A DNA stretch of 62,943 nucleotides, filler included, from Intoshia linei (Eukaryota > Animalia > Orthonectida): NCBI GenBank assembly GCA_001642005.1. It is 4 parts of 4 records of this genome, joined end to end, with 100 filler letters (N's around TTAATTAATTAA, not from the genome) between each part and the next. Parts side by side here need not be neighbours in the genome. Positions count along the whole stretch, not along the records: positions 1 to 9,119 come from LWCA01001391.1; 3 more parts are not named here. One strand, written 5' to 3'. Positions 1 through 9,119 of this stretch are shown piece after piece (positions within the stretch are counted from its first letter, which is position 1; every line of letters begins with the position of its first letter). Position numbers and translations under genes: made by a program. A model generated the notes under the pieces. The model was not told where the DNA came from, did no database searches, and saw nothing but the letters and a program-made list of their open reading frames with translations.

Positions 1-606
1 AATTCCCATAAACTTTATCAAGTAAGTCGCTGTTTCCATCTATGTGATTGCACCTACGAATTATCTGCTGGCGAAGATGGTCGACATCTGCAATTCTTGT
101 AAAGTAAACTATTTGTTTGAGGTGGCCCAAAAATAAAAATCCATTTGGGTCAAGTCAGGGGACCTTGGTGCCCATTCTACGGTACCTCTTCGGCCAATCC
201 AATTTTCAAAATTGCCATTCAGCCAATTTCGCAAAATCGTCGCGTAATGAGGCGGGGCGCCATCTTGCATAAACCAAAGGGGTTTACTGTCGTGTGAGAG
301 ATTGGCTTACGATCAGGATAAATTTTATTAAATTTCTTAGCAACAGATCGATTAGTGGCACCATCAGCACCAGATATGAGCATTAGTTCAACTCGTTCGT
401 CAATTGTTAAGGGTGTATCTGAAAAATAAAATAATTTTTTTAAAGGCAAATCATACCTAAAAAACTTTGATTGGAATTAAATTTGACAGTTATAGTAACA
501 GATACATAAACAATGTTTCATTAATCTATAAAAGAACATGTATTTTATACTTAAAGAGACGAAAACTTCACCTAATTCTTTGGTGCGCGACTTATGGCCC
601 ATCCTG
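1..606 (-). mobile_element. Internally deleted Tc1/mariner (maT/rosa-like, DUF4817-type) transposon relic, truncated by the window start
   Basis: Minus-strand translation of ~121-277 gives WFMQDGAPPHYATILRNWLNGNFENWIGRRGTVEWAPRSPDLTQMDFYFW (DDD catalytic core). It is joined directly to an HTH fragment (LTIDERVELMLISG...RSVAKKFNKIYPDR). The end reads TA|CAGGATGGGCCATAAGTCGC at 608-587 and interrupts a Helitron-family copy. Confidence 0.85.
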
Positions 607-608
607 TA

Positions 609-1517
609 TATTAAAAATTATTTTTCATCGGGAACGCGTAAATTTATCGGGTTGAAATTTTGTATTTATATCAAATGGAATAAGCTCTATCAGAATAATC
701 TCTTTTTTTTAATTTCGGACCGTTAATTATTTCACATTTTTTGTTTTAATAAAATATATCGGAAAAAAAATATATGAATACTAAAATGCTTTTTTGACTG
801 TGAAGTCATCACTTATTCGGATTGAAATGTTTAATGTGTGTTAACAGGATACAACTGTACCACCTGTAAATTTTTTGTAAATTCTAGGGCTGTTTTCATT
901 AAAAAAAGAAGGGTAATTTGGGGTTTTGCCCTGAAGATATAATTTTTTTAAATTTAAATTTATGATAATGTTTAAGATTTTAAAATCCGCATTAGCGTAT
1001 GTTTTTTTAAATTCTCCAACTCGTTTGATTTTCAAAAAAAGGGACAACAGGGGTTTTTAACCCTTAAGATGTGAAAACGGGAGGTTGAAATTTATCTTAT
1101 TATACGTCCCGGAAAAAACTGTAATTGAAATGTTATCTTTAAAAAATTTTAAAAATGGTAGTTATTTCAATAAAGTGGAACACACACACAGACACACAAA
1201 CAAAAATCGCGTAACCTTTTATATAAGTTAGAATTCTGTCTAATAAATTAATAAAATGGAATAACAATTATTTTTAAAATTCTTTACGCAAATGTTTACA
1301 AAAAAAATTAAGATGGAATAATTCACTTTAAATGGTAGTGTGATATGATGGTTCCACCTGAAACAAGTTGGGAAACACTTCATTAAAGGATTGATAATAG
1401 TGAATGGTAGCATTTTTAAGTTAGATTTTCAACGTGAATTTATTTTTTTGTAGAATAAAAATGTGCTCTCGTCAGAGCTAGGTGCTGTTTGTACGTAGTA
1501 CATACCAGTCAACCTAG
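609..1517. mobile_element. Two pieces of the non-autonomous Helitron family (5' part on minus at 609-1231; 3' end on plus at ~1233-1517)
   Basis: Near-identical to 45110-46409. Has the CA/CAGA microsatellite near the 5' end and the terminal GTACGTAGTAC hairpin followed by CTAG|T at 1514-1518. Confidence 0.75.
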
Positions 1518-1649
1518 TATATTTATTATAAATATGATTTATTAAAGAGGTACGTGAATTATCACAACATGTGACTACTAATTTAAATTTAACCACAAAA
1601 ACTGATAATCAGTATATTTAAATGTATAAGATTTTAATTTAAAAACTAG

Positions 1650-1872
1650 ACGACCTCAAGGAATCGCAATAACTCCGGACCGTAAAATTATTGTAGTAGA
1701 ATCACGCAATAGCCGAGTTCAAATATTCGACAAATGCGGAAATCCTATAACGTGCATTTACACAAATAGATTAAACAGTGTCGAATTTTGTGAACCTCAA
1801 GGTGTCTGCATTGACATTGATGGCAACATTGCAGTCGTAGACCAACAAACGGGATTTATTCAAGTGTTTTAG
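1650..1872 (+). CDS. TRIM71: Terminal exon of a TRIM71/LIN-41-like TRIM-NHL protein (last two NHL repeats); upstream exons lie outside the window
   Basis: AG acceptor at 1648-1649. Translation RPQGIAITPDRKIIVVESRNSRVQIFDKCG...FCEPQGVCIDIDGNIAVVDQQTGFIQVF* matches the TRIM71 C-terminus pattern RPQGVAV...IIVADSRNHRVQMF...RPSGIAI...VVD...RILVF*. It has no ATG, so the ORF track misses it. Confidence 0.8.
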
Positions 1873-2189
1873 TTAAGGAATGAAAAAATTATTGTTATTT
1901 TTCAAATAAATTTTTTAATTTGTGTCATATTTTATGAAAGTTATAACATGGAAATAAGTTAACTAGTACAATGTAATTACAATATGGAAATAATTTACCA
2001 TAAAATCCAAGTCAAGATGAACAAAATTTATCAAAGTAAATAAGGTTAGACAAGTAATCGATAATCTTAAACCAAGTATAGCAATAGATGTCAAAATATT
2101 GTAGAAACTTAAACGAACAATCGATACTGAACTCATCAAATAGTAACGTGCTAATTATTTGTACGCATTGACTGAACTTGAAAAACTTG

Positions 2190-2282
2190 ACTATACCTGC
2201 TACCTACTACCTTGTAGTACTATACTAGGTACCTGCTAGTTTCGAAATATGTATCGGTATCACTACTTGGTGTACTACTTTG
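2190..2282 (+). promoter_or_regulatory. Cluster of putative let-7 complementary sites in the inferred lin-41 3'UTR
   Basis: 2190-2214 ACTATAC-CTGCT-ACCTACTACCT-TG versus the let-7 reverse complement AACTATACAACCTACTACCTCA. Weaker sites: ACTATACTAGGTACCTG (2219-2235), CACTACTTGG (2261-2270), GTACTACTTTG (2272-2282). Confidence 0.65.
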
Positions 2283-2874
2283 AAATTATCAAATCATTAA
2301 ATACACAAGAATCATTCATTATCATTCCAACTGACACCACTTGCTTTCATTGTATTGTTACTATGCATCAACAAATTTTGTCTTTAATATAGTTAAATTG
2401 ATACTTTAGTTGAAAATAAAGTTGACATTAAATGACAATCTCGTAGTTGGATTGATTATGAGATTTATGTAAAAGCATTTTATTATTTTTAAATCAAATA
2501 AGAATACAAAAAATCTAAATATTATTCATAGTCAATAAAATTTATCTGGATCAACTTTTGAGGTATTTGATTATATAAGTTAAATTATACATTATTGTAT
2601 AAAATTAAGGAATAATTTTTACGGTAGATTTAAGATGCTTCAAAAATGACGAGCTAATTCTATATATTTTTGAAATAATTGATTTATTCAAAAATTATAC
2701 ATTGCTTTAAATTTTAAAAATATTGAAAAAATGTAAAATTTTTAAGTTATATTTAAGTTTTCAAATATATATTTATTATTTTTATATATTTGTTATTCAT
2801 TAAATTTGTGTACATTTTTTTTCTGCTATTTTGTTTAAATTTTAATTGTCAATTTTATAGATTGTGGTATCAAT

Positions 2875-5800
2875 ATGCTTTTTAAATATTTTTCATTATC
2901 TGGAATATTTGGGAAAAAATTTAATGTTTTCGAAAAAACTCATGGAAAAATAACATCTTTTCCAGATAGCATTTTTAGAAATTACAGAAATATTGAAGAA
3001 ATTTATCTAAATTGTAATTGTATCAAAACTATTCCAAAGGTATTTTTTATTCTTTGTATTGTAAACTTGATTCGTTGTAACCTTTAGTTATATTTATAAT
3101 TTTACAATAATATACATTTCTTAACCTTTTAAACAAATTAATCAAGTATCAAACGAGTCTACTAATGTAAACATGTTAATATTCTGAATTCACCTGTAAT
3201 CTATTTTGTGCAAGTTTTTCGATAATTATTGGGAAAAATTGTTGCCAGAATGTAATTCTCCAATAAATTAATAAGTAAATATATTTTTATGCTTTTTTTA
3301 TTGTTAAAATGTACTTGGTTAGTCATTAATTAAGTGGAATTGTCAAATTTTTGGTTCTTTGAACATTTTTAATGGAATTTTTACATCGTAGATAGAAAAT
3401 TTACCGACCTGTAAGAAACTAATTAATTATATCTAATATACACTACAAACTTGAATCAGCGCCAAAGTTAAAGTTAAAATATCTTTAAACAACTATATTT
3501 CAATTTCATATTAGTTTAAATGGAATATTTTTAATTACCGTTAAATTAAAATTTAACCGATAACTACTTACTATAAATTTAAAAACTAGGAGATTAATAT
3601 GGTTTTAAGAAAAAATCACATTTTTTATGTGTTTTGCTTTAATATTGTTACTATTATTGCTTGTAGTACACTACAGTGTGTGTTTATCTATCCTTTTTAC
3701 TATTTGGATCAGATTTTTTCTAAAAATGTCTGGGTTAATATGCATTTCTTTTTAAATTCTTAACTAAGATTTAAAAAGATTAATATTTTACTGAAGCATC
3801 ATCAAAAATTTGATATCATCGTTTAATAATGGATCATATACTCCTAGGGCTTATTTGGCTTTTCAAACTTTTTTTAAATTGAACCAAATTTTATACTAAG
3901 AATCGAATTTCAAAATATTGAATGAAATTCAGTATTTCCCAATTTTTTTTATGATAGGCCTCATTTTCACTATGAAAAAAATCTCAGGCCCCACTTAAAT
4001 AAACAAAATTTTTTGTAAAATTTGTAAATTTACATAATAGACAAAAAAATTTGAACTAACGGCCAGTTTTTTGGGTACAACAATTCAGTCACAAAAAATT
4101 ATTATTAATTCAATTATTACTTTTTATGAAAAACTAATTTTTTAATATATTATAAATGGAAAGCTATTATTGCCGAAATTCGAGCGAATTATAATAAAAT
4201 AATGATAAAAAAATAATAATTTAATTATTTTTTAAAATTAATGAGATGATTGACCTGTAAATTCTTACAGAATTTCTCAACATTAGTCCCTAATGTTGAA
4301 AGATTTGAACGTAGATCTCCTTGTTTTGAAATTCGGAGTCTATTTATCTTTTTTGTTAGTACAAACAGTTTTGTAAGTCCAAAATAGCACTAAACCAGCA
4401 TTCTCTTAAATAAGAGAATGGAAATGGCAACAAAGCCATCATATTAAAATTAGTTAAAATTTGATAGTTTTTTGAAACTTCTTCGGTAAGGCATATCATA
4501 ATTCCTTTGCTGCCAAATACGTCAAAACGTATATTAAAATCATTTTTTATTGTTTTTAAATTAATATTACATATCTATAAATCACACCTCCTTACTTCAA
4601 TGTATGATTAAAGGGTTAATTTCTCATTTTGCATAAATAGATGCAGTTTTTTGAGGTTGAAAAATTTTTTAAATCATTGAAAAAAGCTGTCAAAAATAAA
4701 TGATGAATGAATCAAAATGATATGAAAATATGAGTATCAATTGACATAGCTTCACAGCCAAATTTAATCAAAAAAATTAATATTATACTTATTATACTAT
4801 TAAACATATTAATTAATATTAATATATTATACACGTAATTTTACTTAAAAAAATATTAACGAGCATTAAATGTGTACACAATAGAAGAATAAATTTAAAA
4901 TATAGCTCGGTTTTAAATAAATTTTTAACAAAATACTTTGAACAATTACATAATTATTATCGATTATATAATTATAATCAGGGATTGGAAATTGATTGCA
5001 ATCAATTATTTTGTATAAACCAATTAATTGAAAAATGAAAAGATAATTTTCAATTAATTGGTTTTTTCATATAACTGAAAAAATATAAATTGAATCCTTA
5101 TATTGACGAATGGTTGGATGAAAAAATTAATTAAATTTTTTTTATGTAATTCAAAAATGACAATATTAAGGTGTCAAGTTGACACTGTCAACACTCGTTG
5201 TAGCGTATCACACTCCCACCATGCTTTATTTATTTCCAGAAACAATTTTTTATTTCCAAATTCGAAGAAAGAAATAAAATAAATAGTATGAAAATATTTT
5301 CTAAATACTATTTTGCAAATAAAATATAATGCAACTAAAATAGTTTGACACTGTATAATAAAATATTAACAACTTTTTATTATTATATGCAATTTTAAAA
5401 AAATAAAAACGAGTTTGTCACCAGAAAAATGATGTATTTAACCTACTAGCTTGACTTTTATGTACTTCGAACAAAGAGCATCCTAGTATTCATCATAACC
5501 GCATGACAGTTTTTTAAAAATGATTATGATATTGTTATCAATCTTCAATTAATTGAAAAATAATTTTTAAACAAACAATTAATTGATTATTTTTCAATAA
5601 TTTTTACCTATTAATTGCAATTAAATTAGTTGCAATCAATTAATTCTAATCCCTGATTATAATCGTTCAGAATAATATATTTTAAGTTAAAATTTATAAA
5701 ATATCTTATTTTATTGGAATATAGAAGATAAATAAAATTTTGGTTGCATTGTGACTATCTTAAGGTCTCTTCTATAATTAGATTAATATTTTCAAAAAGT

Positions 5801-8800
5801 TTGACAAAGTGTTTACATTTATTTATCCCACAAACATTGTTTAAACACCAAAACAAAATAATCATATTAATTATAATTATAAAAAAAAATTTCGTTATTA
5901 TAGAATAACGTCAATTGTAAATGATGCAGCTGAACGCGTTTTATTAAAATATACAAACATTTTTGATTTTTCTTCACAAACAAAGCAGGAATTTAAGTCT
6001 GTAAAAAAAATTAAGAAAACCTTTGCCATCAGATTGTTATTTTTTTTGAAATTACACCTAATCTACTGGGTAGATTTTTGAATTTCTTATTAAAATATTT
6101 GATGTGATTTTTGTCTATTTTTCTATAATTTTGTCCTTTTTAATACGAAAATCACTTCTATGCAGAGCCGCACCTATCTTTGCGATAGCCCTCTTTGGGT
6201 GAACGGAATATTTATAAAATGTCAAGTTAAGAGCCTTGTAGAGGTGACTAGGGCTATATGACACATACTTTGAAAAAAATTTTTATCAGTGTCTATTTTT
6301 CAGTTTTTGAGTGGCTCTAGCTTGGTAGGTTCGGCTCTGTATTTGTCAATATAATATATTATGTGTTATTTTAGGACATTAGTTATTTAACTAAACTACG
6401 AATATTAAATCTGGCTGAAAACGACATTATGTATATTCCTGCAGAAATTGCAAAACTCCAACATTTATCAGAATTAGATATAAAAAAGAATGACATTCTA
6501 TCATTACCATTAGAATTTGAAAATTTATGTAATTTGACATATTTGGATTTAAGTTCAAACAAATTCAACAATTTTCCTCTAGGATTAATGAAACTGACTC
6601 GGTTGATTTATTTAAACCTTAACGACACCGGAATAAATATTATACCATCCACAATAAAAAATTTGATTTATTTAAAATCTCTAGAAATGCGAGACAATTG
6701 TATTGAAATTATACCATCCGAATTGTCGACCCTTGCAAAACTGGAAATTTTCGATGTCAGTGCTAACCTTATATCTGTTTTACCTATGAATATTGGAAAA
6801 TTAAAACAATTGGATGAATTTTGGGTCGATTGTTGCGAATTGACATCTTTACCGGAATCTATTGGTGAAATGATTAAAATTACCCATTTTAGTTGTTGTG
6901 AAAATTTGCTTATTTCCTTGTCTCAATCCTTTACCGATCTATACAATATAGTAGATTTAAATCTGTCTCAAAATTCTCTATGTAGTCTCCCGATAGATAT
7001 AGGAAATTTGATCAATTTGGTTATTTTTAAAGTCGATGATAATCAAATATCAGTATTGCCGGATTCTATATGCAAATGTAATCAATTGACAGAATTGATT
7101 TTAACCCATAACACATTTAAACAACTCCCTCAACAGTTTGGTAAATTAAAAAAATTGTACAATTTAAATGTCGATATGAACGAGTTAACGTCATTACCAG
7201 ACTCGGTATTTTTCTATTGATTTAAATTTTAAATGTATTTTGAATTTGGTTATTTTTTTTACCTAAAATTTAGATGTGCGACTGTGAAAACCTTTCAATT
7301 TTGTCTGTCAGGCGAAATCTAATTAAATGTTTACCCGAAAAAATTGGCCAACTTCAAAATCTTATAGTTTTGGACGTGTCATCTAATTGGTAAAATTATA
7401 CGATTTCAAAACTAATTCATTTTCTAGTTTGAATCATTTACCCATCTCTTTAACCAACTGTCACCCTAAAGCTATATGGCTCAATGAAAACCAATCGAAA
7501 TCTCTTATAAAGTTGGAAACTGAGTTTAACGAGACTGAAAATGCTGTGGTGGTCACTTGTTGTTTGTTACCACAAGTCCGAAACGAATTTGGTATATATT
7601 TTTGTTTAATGTTTTAAAAATGTTATATTTACAGATACAACAAATGCATTAAGCAGATCTAGTGCTTCTGATGATTCGGCTTCATCTTTATCTGTAATTT
7701 CTGAAACAGAACAAAATGTAAATATCGAACAAAAAGTTAACCATTCTGTTGTCAATTTTAATGAATTACCTAAAAAAACTAAACAAGTTCGTTTTTTAGT
7801 TTAAAATGTTTATTCTGTTTAGAATTCTCTTTCGAGACAAAATACTCCCCACCCTAAAGAATTGAGAGAAGCTCAAACTCGACTTATACGCGAAAGCAAA
7901 ATGGTAATTAAACTTGAAATTATTTTGATTATTTTTAGTCAGAAGTCAAAAATAAATCAACGTCTACAAATGTTAGAGAAAAATACGAAATTGAATTAAT
8001 CCACAGTCCTATTGTTCAAAGTATTGATTTGTAGATTTTAGTATAATTTTAGCTATTAATGCAGAAAACCCTATTGATTCGGGTATATCTTCTAATCAAC
8101 TCAAAAATTCGTTCGATAGTACAAGTTCACTGGTAAATTTTGTTTTTATTTTTTAATTAGTGGTTTATATGGTCCATTTTTCTAACTTTTACAAATTAAA
8201 AGGAAATTTTTTTGGAGAAAAAATAAATTGACAAAAAGAAACTTTTGTTTTTTGACGACAAAACTACCATATATCAATAATGTATTTTTACGCAATCATT
8301 CTAAAATTATGTTTAAAATCCCTTAAATCTTCTAATACTTTTAATTATTGATGAAAATTACGCTAAATATGGATAGATACAATTAAAACTATGTATAAAT
8401 TTATTTAGAATACCAATAATGCTTCGGTTGAAATTGTTAGCGTTTATACCAAAAAAGCAGATTTATCTTTTATTATGCCTGAAAATGCAGGATTAGGGAT
8501 TAGTATATCTGGAGGAGTAGGTTCCATGCCATATTTTGATAATGATCATGTATCTCTTCTGTTATCTTTACATTTTGTTGTTTAGTCTATTTTTATAAGT
8601 GATGTTGAACAAAATGGTTATGCTGAATATTTTGGTTTACAAAAGAATGATAAGATTTTGTATGTAAATAATAACAGTTTCAACAATATAAGCCACAATG
8701 ATGCCGTTGATATTTTAAGCAATTTGCGTAGTGTAGTCTCCATGTGCGTTGAACGCAAAGTTGTAAACAATAAACCCACCAAAATCAATAATCACACCTT

Positions 8801-8954
8801 TAAGGTTATTTTTTATAATTGATAAAATAATTACATTTAGACTGCAACTATAAAATGCAATGAATACCAACAATTTGGATTTAAAGCAATTTCTTCGGCA
8901 GATTGCCATGTATATCCATTTGGACCTAAAAATTCGGGAATTTACATTTCAAAG
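2875..8954 (+). CDS. scrib: Scribble / LAP-family LRR+LAPSD+PDZ polarity protein; multi-exon, 3'-truncated at the contig linker
   Basis: Exons include 2875-3039, 6375-7205, 7274-7389, 7428-7591, 7635-~7787, ~7823-7903, 8409-~8549, ~8585-8803 and 8841-8954, all with GT-AG ends. LRR array; LAPSDa KAIWLNENQSKSLIKLETE...VVTCCLLPQ; LAPSDb LSRQNTPHPKELR; PDZ GLGISISGGVGSMPYFDNDHSIFISDV; a second PDZ starts ...YPFGPKNSGIYISK. Confidence 0.92.
3930..4560 (-). mobile_element. Degraded hAT (Buster/Charlie-type) element in Scribble intron 1
   Basis: Begins CAGTATTTCCCAATTTTTTTT...AGGCC, the reverse complement of the right end of element 21979-22627. Carries a frameshifted hAT dimerisation remnant (ALLPFPFSYLRECWFSA). 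The far boundary is approximate. Confidence 0.65.
4979..5655. mobile_element. hAT-type MITE with 8-bp TSD ATTATAAT
   Basis: TIRs CAGGGATTGGAAATTGATTGCAA / TTGCAATCAATTAATTCTAATCCCTG. Identical ATTATAAT at 4971-4978 and 5656-5663. Confidence 0.85.
6163..6339. mobile_element. Short MITE-like element
   Basis: Imperfect TIRs CAGAGCCGCACCTATC / GGTAGGTTCGGCTCTG. No matching TSD seen. Confidence 0.45.
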
Positions 8955-9119
8955 GTTAGATGTATATAATACAGGCTGATTTCTATTTAACTGAAAAAAA
9001 GTCTTGATTAACGGACTGAATTTTTCTGAAGTACAAAAATTCTGTTAAATTTTAACTTAAAATGACTACTGTCTTTTCTCGATTATAAGCAGACCCCTGA
9101 AATACAAATTTTCAGTGAA

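Follow-up and report, generated by a model that had tools for sequence, protein, structure and literature searches.

The locus and its lin-41/TRIM71 gene

The window analysed here is a stretch of 62,943 nucleotides from Intoshia linei, of which positions 1-9119 are one entire contig (C640) of the 41.6-Mb, 3,520-contig assembly. This contig carries the end of a gene for an NHL-repeat protein, its 3' flank, and the next gene on the same strand. The features referred to throughout are as follows.

1-1649, plus strand: 3' portion of the final TRIM71 intron, holding a mariner remnant and a dispersed repeat
about 1-450, minus strand: decayed mariner remnant; the translation of 1-300 corresponds to a transposase C terminus with a frameshift
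about 841-1047: dispersed repeat, with further copies of its peptide in contig C1717 and the C430 tail
1650-1872, plus strand: last coding exon of lin-41/TRIM71 with NHL repeats 5 and 6, splice acceptor AG at 1648-1649, stop codon TAG at 1870-1872
1873-2440, plus strand: putative 3' untranslated region (UTR) of TRIM71, of predicted extent
1905-1910, plus strand: proximal AATAAA, 33 nt past the stop codon and followed by a T/GT-rich stretch; its sole use would exclude the let-7 sites
2189-2213, plus strand: let-7 complementary site A, with G:U at g2, Watson-Crick pairs at g3-g13 and g15-g21, G:U at g22, and a 5-nt target loop opposite g14
2219-2244, plus strand: let-7 complementary site B, a 29-nt tandem copy of site A
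2250-2282, plus strand: two wobble-seed motifs at background energies (-8.6 and -10.1 kcal/mol)
2415-2432, plus strand: distal AATAAA (2415) and ATTAAA (2427), followed by a GT-rich stretch; GC content drops past about 2440
2875-7617, plus strand: next gene, encoding a leucine-rich repeat (LRR) protein, with an ATG at 2875, open reading frames at 2875-3087, 6429-7220, and 7387-7617, and matches to Pfam LRR families

Reading and translating the sequence confirmed the starting observation of the original prediction, namely an NHL exon at 1650-1872 that ends in a stop codon, with a let-7 motif 318 nt beyond it. The exon codes for 73 residues, with one further codon split at the junction, scores 50.8 bits against the Pfam NHL model, and holds two NHL repeats. 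Taken alone, it favours TRIM71 over other NHL proteins only narrowly: its best matches in the PDB are TRIM71 chains at 87-88 bits, compared to 83 bits for Thin and 75 bits for TRIM2.

A genome-wide scan for NHL repeats located the upstream exons at the end of another contig (C430; 20,504 bases), where the annotation has them as OAF67356.1 (TRIM71, partial, Intoshia linei), a protein of 692 amino acids that stands alone in its cluster. The last 6.5 kb of this contig contain three exons, the first for a coiled-coil region, the second for the end of a filamin domain together with the linker and NHL1, and the third for NHL2-4. The second of these is collinear with the filamin-NHL chain of zebrafish Lin41 (6FPT; 131 bits), and the Pfam Filamin model scores 19.6 bits, below its cut-off of 26.9. 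With the exons compared singly rather than as a joined spliced protein, the NHL2-4 exon reaches 204 bits against TRIM71, 157 against Thin, 118 against TRIM3, and 65 against Brat. Named animal relatives of the NHL region are nearly all TRIM71/wech/LIN41 proteins at ~50% identity.

The final exon on contig C430 ends in ...GQI plus AG and is followed by a GT donor; base 1650 supplies the third letter of an AGA codon, from which the frame stays open as far as the stop codon. NHL1-4 on contig C430 and NHL5-6 on exon 1650-1872 reproduce the repeat order of TRIM71. Given the matching splice phase and the collinearity of the exons with TRIM71, we assign 1650-1872 as the missing last exon, and thus the C terminus, of the partial gene. 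The last intron is more than 2.4 kb long and rich in repeats, and copies of the element at 841-1047 also lie in the tail of contig C430; this repeat-filled intron broke the assembly and split TRIM71 over two contigs.

The lin-41/TRIM71 identity put forward in the original prediction was borne out by the NHL bit scores, the filamin-NHL collinearity, the names of the relatives, and the splice phase. On this evidence we regard the gene as the single lin-41/TRIM71 orthologue of Intoshia linei. Other NHL genes in the assembly are distinct from it, among them a Brat-like gene of 837 amino acids on contig C2720 and others on contigs C955 and C1717. No close relatives of Intoshia TRIM71 were found in the protein collections, where its nearest matches are the TRIM71 proteins of other phyla at ~50% identity.

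The N-terminal part of the protein is different. The first 369 of the 692 annotated amino acids gave no Pfam hit, neither a RING nor a B-box could be detected in the annotated protein or elsewhere on contig C430, where the genome-wide scan gave no B-box hit, and an adrenodoxin-like gene lies directly upstream of the annotated TRIM71 start. The E3-ligase module (RING and B-boxes) therefore seems to have been lost from Intoshia TRIM71, and the orthology holds through the filamin-NHL part despite the undetected RING and B-boxes.

Complementarity to let-7 in the 3' flank

Site A pairs with canonical let-7 exactly as first described, through 18 Watson-Crick and 2 G:U pairs at -25.7 kcal/mol, and no other place on the two strands of the window gives a better let-7 duplex. 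The shuffled controls that had been proposed for this site were run, and its energy was reached in none of 200 dinucleotide-shuffled flanks, by none of 200 shuffled miRNAs on the real flank, and in none of 30,000 random 32-nt windows (mean -6.3, sd 2.5 kcal/mol). The best site per shuffle averaged -14.3 kcal/mol (sd 2.1), with extremes of -21.8 and -22.5 kcal/mol in the two controls. The core pattern of the site (a 10-mer, a gap of 0-8 nt, and a 6-mer) occurs once in the 41.6-Mb assembly, counting both strands, at site A itself; ~0.1 occurrences are expected from base composition, and a reversed-pattern control gave none. The motif does not belong to a dispersed repeat, which had been raised as a possible objection, as the 801-bp region around the sites is single-copy in the assembly. 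Site A is far beyond chance.

Site B follows as a direct repeat of site A at a spacing of 29 nt. In its best register, it pairs with let-7 at g15-g21 by Watson-Crick pairs and, after a 5-nt loop, at g6-g13 with a U9:G wobble; beyond a bulged G at 2239, the seed end continues with G5:U, G4:U, A3-U, G2-C (C2243), and U1:G. The duplex comprises 16 Watson-Crick and 4 G:U pairs at -18.3 kcal/mol, with a per-window p of 2.7e-4 against random 32-nt windows. Both sites thus pair g9-g13 and g15-g21 and leave g14 alone unpaired between these blocks, and both have an imperfect seed, with one G:U at g2 in site A and a bulged target G with G:U pairs at g4 and g5 in site B.

When the two sites are aligned in the let-7 register, 16 of the 20 paired columns are identical, and the other four differ by transitions that preserve pairing: going from site A to site B, the base opposite U9 changes from A to G, those facing G4 and G5 change from C to T, and the one facing G2 changes from T to C. 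Three of the five loop columns differ, two of them by transversion. Small as these numbers are (Fisher p 0.11), such a substitution pattern is what selection for pairing with one RNA would be predicted to leave.

Several details of the original prediction need revision in light of these registers. A second site had been proposed and is indeed present, although the register described for it is not the best one, which is 2219-2244. The statement that all sites lack a C opposite g2 is wrong for site B, where G2 pairs with C2243. A changed 5' end of the local let-7, which had been suggested on that basis, is disfavoured because sites A and B jointly call for the canonical nucleotides at g2, g4, g5, and g9 (G2, G4, G5, and U9). 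The two wobble-seed motifs that had completed a proposed cluster of four sites fall within background (random-window mean -6.3 kcal/mol; best of a flank typically -14.3 kcal/mol), and of the four only A and B stand out, both far beyond chance. For these two, the proposed architecture of tandem imperfect-seed sites with extensive 3' pairing, as in Caenorhabditis elegans lin-41, is supported, and we consider A and B to be real let-7 complementary sites of this 3'-compensatory type, judging by their predicted pairing.

The surrounding flank is fast-evolving and has a GC content of 22%. No open reading frame of at least 60 amino acids was found on either strand of 1873-2874, and GC content is 26.8% up to about 2440 versus 16.8% in 2441-2874. 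AATAAA occurs at 1905, 2415, and 2534 and ATTAAA at 2296, 2427, and 2799, that is, three times each against 3.3 expected. With these hexamers at chance frequency, the idea that proximal and distal signals form an alternative-polyadenylation toggle is not upheld. The hexamers at 2415 and 2427 are the likeliest candidate poly(A) signals for a UTR that contains the sites. The downstream LRR gene is a candidate Scribble/Erbin (LAP) type gene, which we presume from its N-terminal and post-LRR motifs. Because the sites share the strand of the gene and follow its stop codon at a distance of 318 nt, in a stretch without open reading frames, and because of the GC profile, the hexamers at 2415 and 2427, and the position of the next gene at 2875, sites A and B most likely fall within the TRIM71 3' UTR.

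The microRNA side

The machinery for making and using microRNAs is present in Intoshia linei, with Drosha (152 bits to human Drosha), Dicer (191 bits), and at least three Argonaute/Piwi loci. Two conserved microRNAs have convincing predicted hairpins: mir-1 on contig C2413 (2 mismatches, -33.6 kcal/mol, full-length Rfam match with E 3.8e-6) and mir-9 on contig C732 (2 mismatches, -27.6 kcal/mol, full-length Rfam match with E 2.8e-5).

Searches of the 41.6-Mb, 3,520-contig assembly recovered no let-7 gene. A search with Rfam models, which has low sensitivity, gave no match; the mature let-7 20-mer is absent from the assembly at up to 3 mismatches; split and IUPAC-degenerate let-7 patterns recovered no gene; and none of the matches in the assembly to 10-, 11-, and 13-mers of the let-7 core, all of which were folded, formed a let-7 hairpin. 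The usual cluster partners of let-7, mir-100 and mir-125, were not found in the assembly, and the same is true of mir-124 and mir-7. No cold-shock domain, and hence no Lin28, was detectable there.

A number of candidates were considered and rejected. The minus strand of the site itself forms only a short imperfect palindrome (z -1.1) with no Rfam match. An exact let-7 13-mer on contig C2463 lies in a Kae1/OSGEP coding exon and its splice donor and has no hairpin, and six copies of a 13-mer with one mismatch belong to a dispersed repeat. Weak hairpins on contigs C3039 and C21 with the let-7 seed on their 3' arm either are no more stable than shuffled sequences or show poor pairing with sites A and B, and have no Rfam let-7 match. 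Masking can be discarded as a cause of the negative searches, as the 304 kb of fetched loci contain only 2 N.

The assembly is fragmented, and failure to find let-7 there does not show that it is absent from the animal. A strongly diverged let-7 would not fit, because both sites match canonical let-7 at g6-g13 and g15-g21. A real loss of let-7 in this reduced lineage is possible, since let-7, mir-100, mir-125, mir-124, and mir-7 were all not found in the assembly. The likeliest explanation is that the let-7 locus, perhaps with its whole cluster, lies in unassembled DNA; alternatively, let-7 may have been lost recently, or the RNA may come from elsewhere.

Interpretation and comparison with known systems

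We propose that the two tandem sites behind the single TRIM71 orthologue reflect a let-7/lin-41 timing switch that has been kept in Intoshia, a reading to which we give a probability of roughly two-thirds (about 0.68). It starts from what is observed here, that is, the gene identity, the sites and their statistics, Drosha, Dicer, and Argonautes, and two conserved miRNA hairpins. Counted in its favour are the sense orientation of the sites and the position of the single genome-wide core behind the classic let-7 target gene; counted against it are the failure to find let-7, mir-100, mir-125, mir-124, mir-7, or a Lin28 in the assembly, the merely ordinary let-7 sites behind TRIM71 of the annelid Ridgeia, and the proximal AATAAA at 1905, which could end transcripts before 2189-2244. 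Under this reading, canonical let-7 held in Argonaute would bind sites A and B cooperatively and repress the lin-41 mRNA late in development, which would release the mRNAs held down by the NHL domain of LIN-41. We infer three elements of this scheme: the inclusion of the sites in the mRNA, the existence of let-7 in the animal, and the repression itself.

Among the rival explanations, the two sites could be inactive leftovers from a time before let-7, mir-100, and mir-125 were lost. Such a relic would agree with the finding of neither these three microRNAs nor mir-124, mir-7, or a Lin28-type cold-shock domain in the 41.6-Mb assembly, and with the heavy gene loss for which the orthonectid lineage is known (about 64% of metazoan BUSCO; PMC11521371). 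Unless the loss was very recent, however, unconstrained sequence should have decayed, whereas 18 of the 20 pairs in site A are still Watson-Crick and, within a fast-evolving flank of 22% GC, sites A and B differ at paired positions by pairing-preserving transitions alone. The negative searches also come from an assembly in 3,520 contigs that has split TRIM71 itself over two, and we consider a relic unlikely. A variant in which Intoshia really no longer has a let-7 of its own (nor mir-100 and mir-125) while two near-perfect sites for canonical let-7 are kept under selection seems highly improbable to us; the sites would then be read by an outside RNA, such as let-7 of the nemertean host entering the plasmodium as a developmental cue, or by let-7 from a locus of unusual form that is invisible to a pattern search. 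It is distinctly unlikely, in turn, that the sites are real but lie outside the TRIM71 mRNA, with transcripts ending at 1905 and the stretch being intergenic or a long 5' UTR of the LRR gene. The AATAAA only 33 nt past the stop codon, with the T/GT-rich stretch after it, would allow this, as would the same-strand orientation of the LRR gene, but it would then have to be fortuitous that the sites are unique and sense-oriented behind lin-41, at odds of roughly 1e-5 for position alone. In addition, poly(A) signal hexamers at chance density lend the one at 1905 no special weight, the GC content stays UTR-like at 27% to about 2440 before falling to 17%, and a 5' UTR as long as about 690 nt would be unusual for such a compact genome.

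The sites could also affect the miRNA instead of the mRNA, through target-directed decay of let-7, as a sponge, or through Argonaute slicing of site A. The contiguous pairing of site A over g2-g13 and again over g15-g22, far beyond ordinary animal sites and also beyond the best TRIM71 sites of the annelid Ridgeia, is what would make this attractive. Known triggers of miRNA decay, however, are mismatched in their centre, at g9-g12, and these positions are paired in the Intoshia sites. As the build also matches that of the repressive lin-41 sites of C. elegans (PMC5909448), we hold an action on the miRNA to be very unlikely. Chance resemblance without meaning is almost negligible. Sites for let-7 were sought after the NHL exon had been seen, and AT-rich DNA yields many partial matches, the exact let-7 13-mer in the Kae1/OSGEP exon being one example; yet none of 200 sequences in either shuffle control and none of 30,000 random windows equalled site A, the sole occurrence of a core expected ~0.1 times genome-wide lies behind lin-41, and a second site of the same build follows 29 nt away.

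With fewer than 10,000 genes and adult bodies of a few hundred cells, orthonectids rank as some of the most reduced bilaterians (PMC11521371), and we found no paper on orthonectid microRNAs in the literature searched. If the let-7/lin-41 switch has indeed been kept, the RNA-level core of the heterochronic pathway, let-7 pairing and RNA binding by the NHL domain of LIN-41, would survive extreme simplification, in a TRIM71 that carries tandem lin-41-type sites and appears to have shed its RING and B-boxes. The architecture of imperfect seeds with 3' pairing, so far studied mainly in C. elegans, would recur in a distantly related spiralian. The missing let-7 gene is the one real loose end of the let-7/lin-41 reading.

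lin-41/Trim71 has been described as a direct let-7 target in diverse phyla, and pairing at let-7 g11-g16 is critical (PMC9161110). In C. elegans, lin-41 carries LCS1, with a bulged A between g4 and g5, and LCS2, with a G:U at g6, 27 nt apart, and extensive seed-distal pairing makes lin-41 respond to let-7 alone (PMC5909448). Intoshia likewise has two neighbouring imperfect-seed sites, one with a wobble and one with a bulge (plus wobbles). The two systems differ in that the C. elegans sites are separated by a 27-nt spacer, whereas those of Intoshia are 29 nt apart from start to start with 5 nt between their paired stretches; in that site A has its wobble at the periphery (g2) rather than in the centre; in that the g9-g13 pairing runs without a central gap; in that the Intoshia sites are a recognisable tandem duplication; and in that a let-7 gene was not found in the Intoshia assembly. 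The let-7 sites in the 3' UTRs of vertebrate TRIM71/LIN41 and Drosophila wech/dappled share both gene family and miRNA with those of Intoshia. In the 6-kb 3' flank of TRIM71 from Ridgeia piscesae, we found one 7-mer seed match and a best site of -20.8 kcal/mol, that is, ordinary let-7 sites alone, without the Intoshia architecture. The Intoshia sites are therefore no obvious inherited copy in their present form.

At the protein level, TRIM71/LIN-41 proteins consist of a RING, B-boxes, a coiled coil, a filamin domain, and six NHL repeats, and the filamin end, linker, and NHL1-6 of the Intoshia protein are collinear with them at ~50% identity. Unlike them, it has no detectable RING or B-box. Fly Wech lacks the RING only, and Intoshia TRIM71 is the more reduced of the two. 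Triggers of target-directed miRNA degradation, such as CYRANO for miR-7, resemble the Intoshia sites in their very extensive 3' pairing and internal loop, but in Intoshia it is the target strand that loops out, opposite g14, and the central positions are paired. That the sites sit behind a gene known as a classic repressed target speaks in favour of repression.

MicroRNA hairpins in the assembly

Two hairpins in the Intoshia linei assembly (G000) were assigned to microRNA families by mature-arm match, fold, and Rfam comparison, and another two, both weak, have the let-7 seed GAGGUAG in the 3' arm (L, excised locus; C, contig):

L053 1118-1188 (G000:C2413:1126-1146), minus strand: mir-1 hairpin
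L077 1492-1559 (G000:C732:6517-6538), plus strand: mir-9 hairpin
L072 about 1470-1560 (G000:C3039:39385), minus strand: weak let-7-seed hairpin
L076 about 1455-1532 (G000:C21:16145): weak let-7-seed hairpin

The mature arm of the mir-1 hairpin is the 3' arm, which differs from canonical miR-1 at two positions. This hairpin folds at -33.6 kcal/mol and matches the Rfam mir-1 model over its full length, with a score of 41.7 bits (E = 3.8e-6) that lies under the gathering score. For mir-9, the mature arm is the 5' arm, and both of its two mismatches are at the mature 3' end; the fold energy is -27.6 kcal/mol, and the Rfam mir-9 match reaches 41.3 bits (E = 2.8e-5). A mature-sequence search of the whole assembly allowing up to three mismatches detected no mir-124, mir-7, mir-100, or mir-125, and no cold-shock domain (Lin28/YBX) was found there at an E value of 0.001. 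The miRNA set of I. linei, on which we found no paper in the library searched, may be strongly reduced.

The let-7-seed hairpins fold at -15 (C3039) and -17 (C21) kcal/mol. As a let-7 candidate, the C3039 hairpin was rejected because shuffled sequences fold equally well (z = -1.1) and an Rfam let-7 match is absent, and the C21 hairpin because it pairs poorly with the two lin-41 sites behind TRIM71 (-16.1 and -10.7). The seed in both is probably there by chance. A let-7-like 13-mer that carries one mismatch (TGAGGTAGTAGAT) has six matches in the assembly (C94, C1605, C1898, C2383, C2410, and C3468), all of which except C2410 share flanking sequence and belong to a single dispersed repeat family, a trap when let-7 is searched for by seed.

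TRIM71 and its last intron

L015 2741-5710 (G000:C430) and window 1650-1872: TRIM71 gene
Window 1-450, minus strand: decayed mariner remnant, last TRIM71 intron
Window 841-1047: dispersed short element, last TRIM71 intron

The I. linei TRIM71 protein comprises a coiled coil, a filamin domain, and six NHL repeats. Since neither RING nor B-box is detectable in it and an adrenodoxin-like gene lies directly upstream on C430, the E3-ligase module seems to have been lost.

The mariner remnant carries an internal deletion and a frameshift, and further copies of the dispersed element lie at the end of C430 (L015 tail) and on C1717 (L012 4900-5064). Together, these two elements are the probable reason why C430 and C640, the contig of the last exon, were assembled apart. 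Window 416-451 is an AT-rich stretch of 36 bases.

Sequence downstream of TRIM71

Window 1941-1961 and 1977-1997: direct repeat, second in the putative TRIM71 3' UTR
Window 2875-7617, plus strand: multi-exon LRR gene, by Pfam LRR matches

The 21-nt repeat units are 86% identical, spaced by 36 nt, and share the core ATGGAAATAA; they may be a further paired regulatory site. In the LRR gene, the Pfam matches are to LRR families, and the N-terminal and post-LRR motifs presumably resemble those of the LAP family (Scribble/Erbin/Lano).
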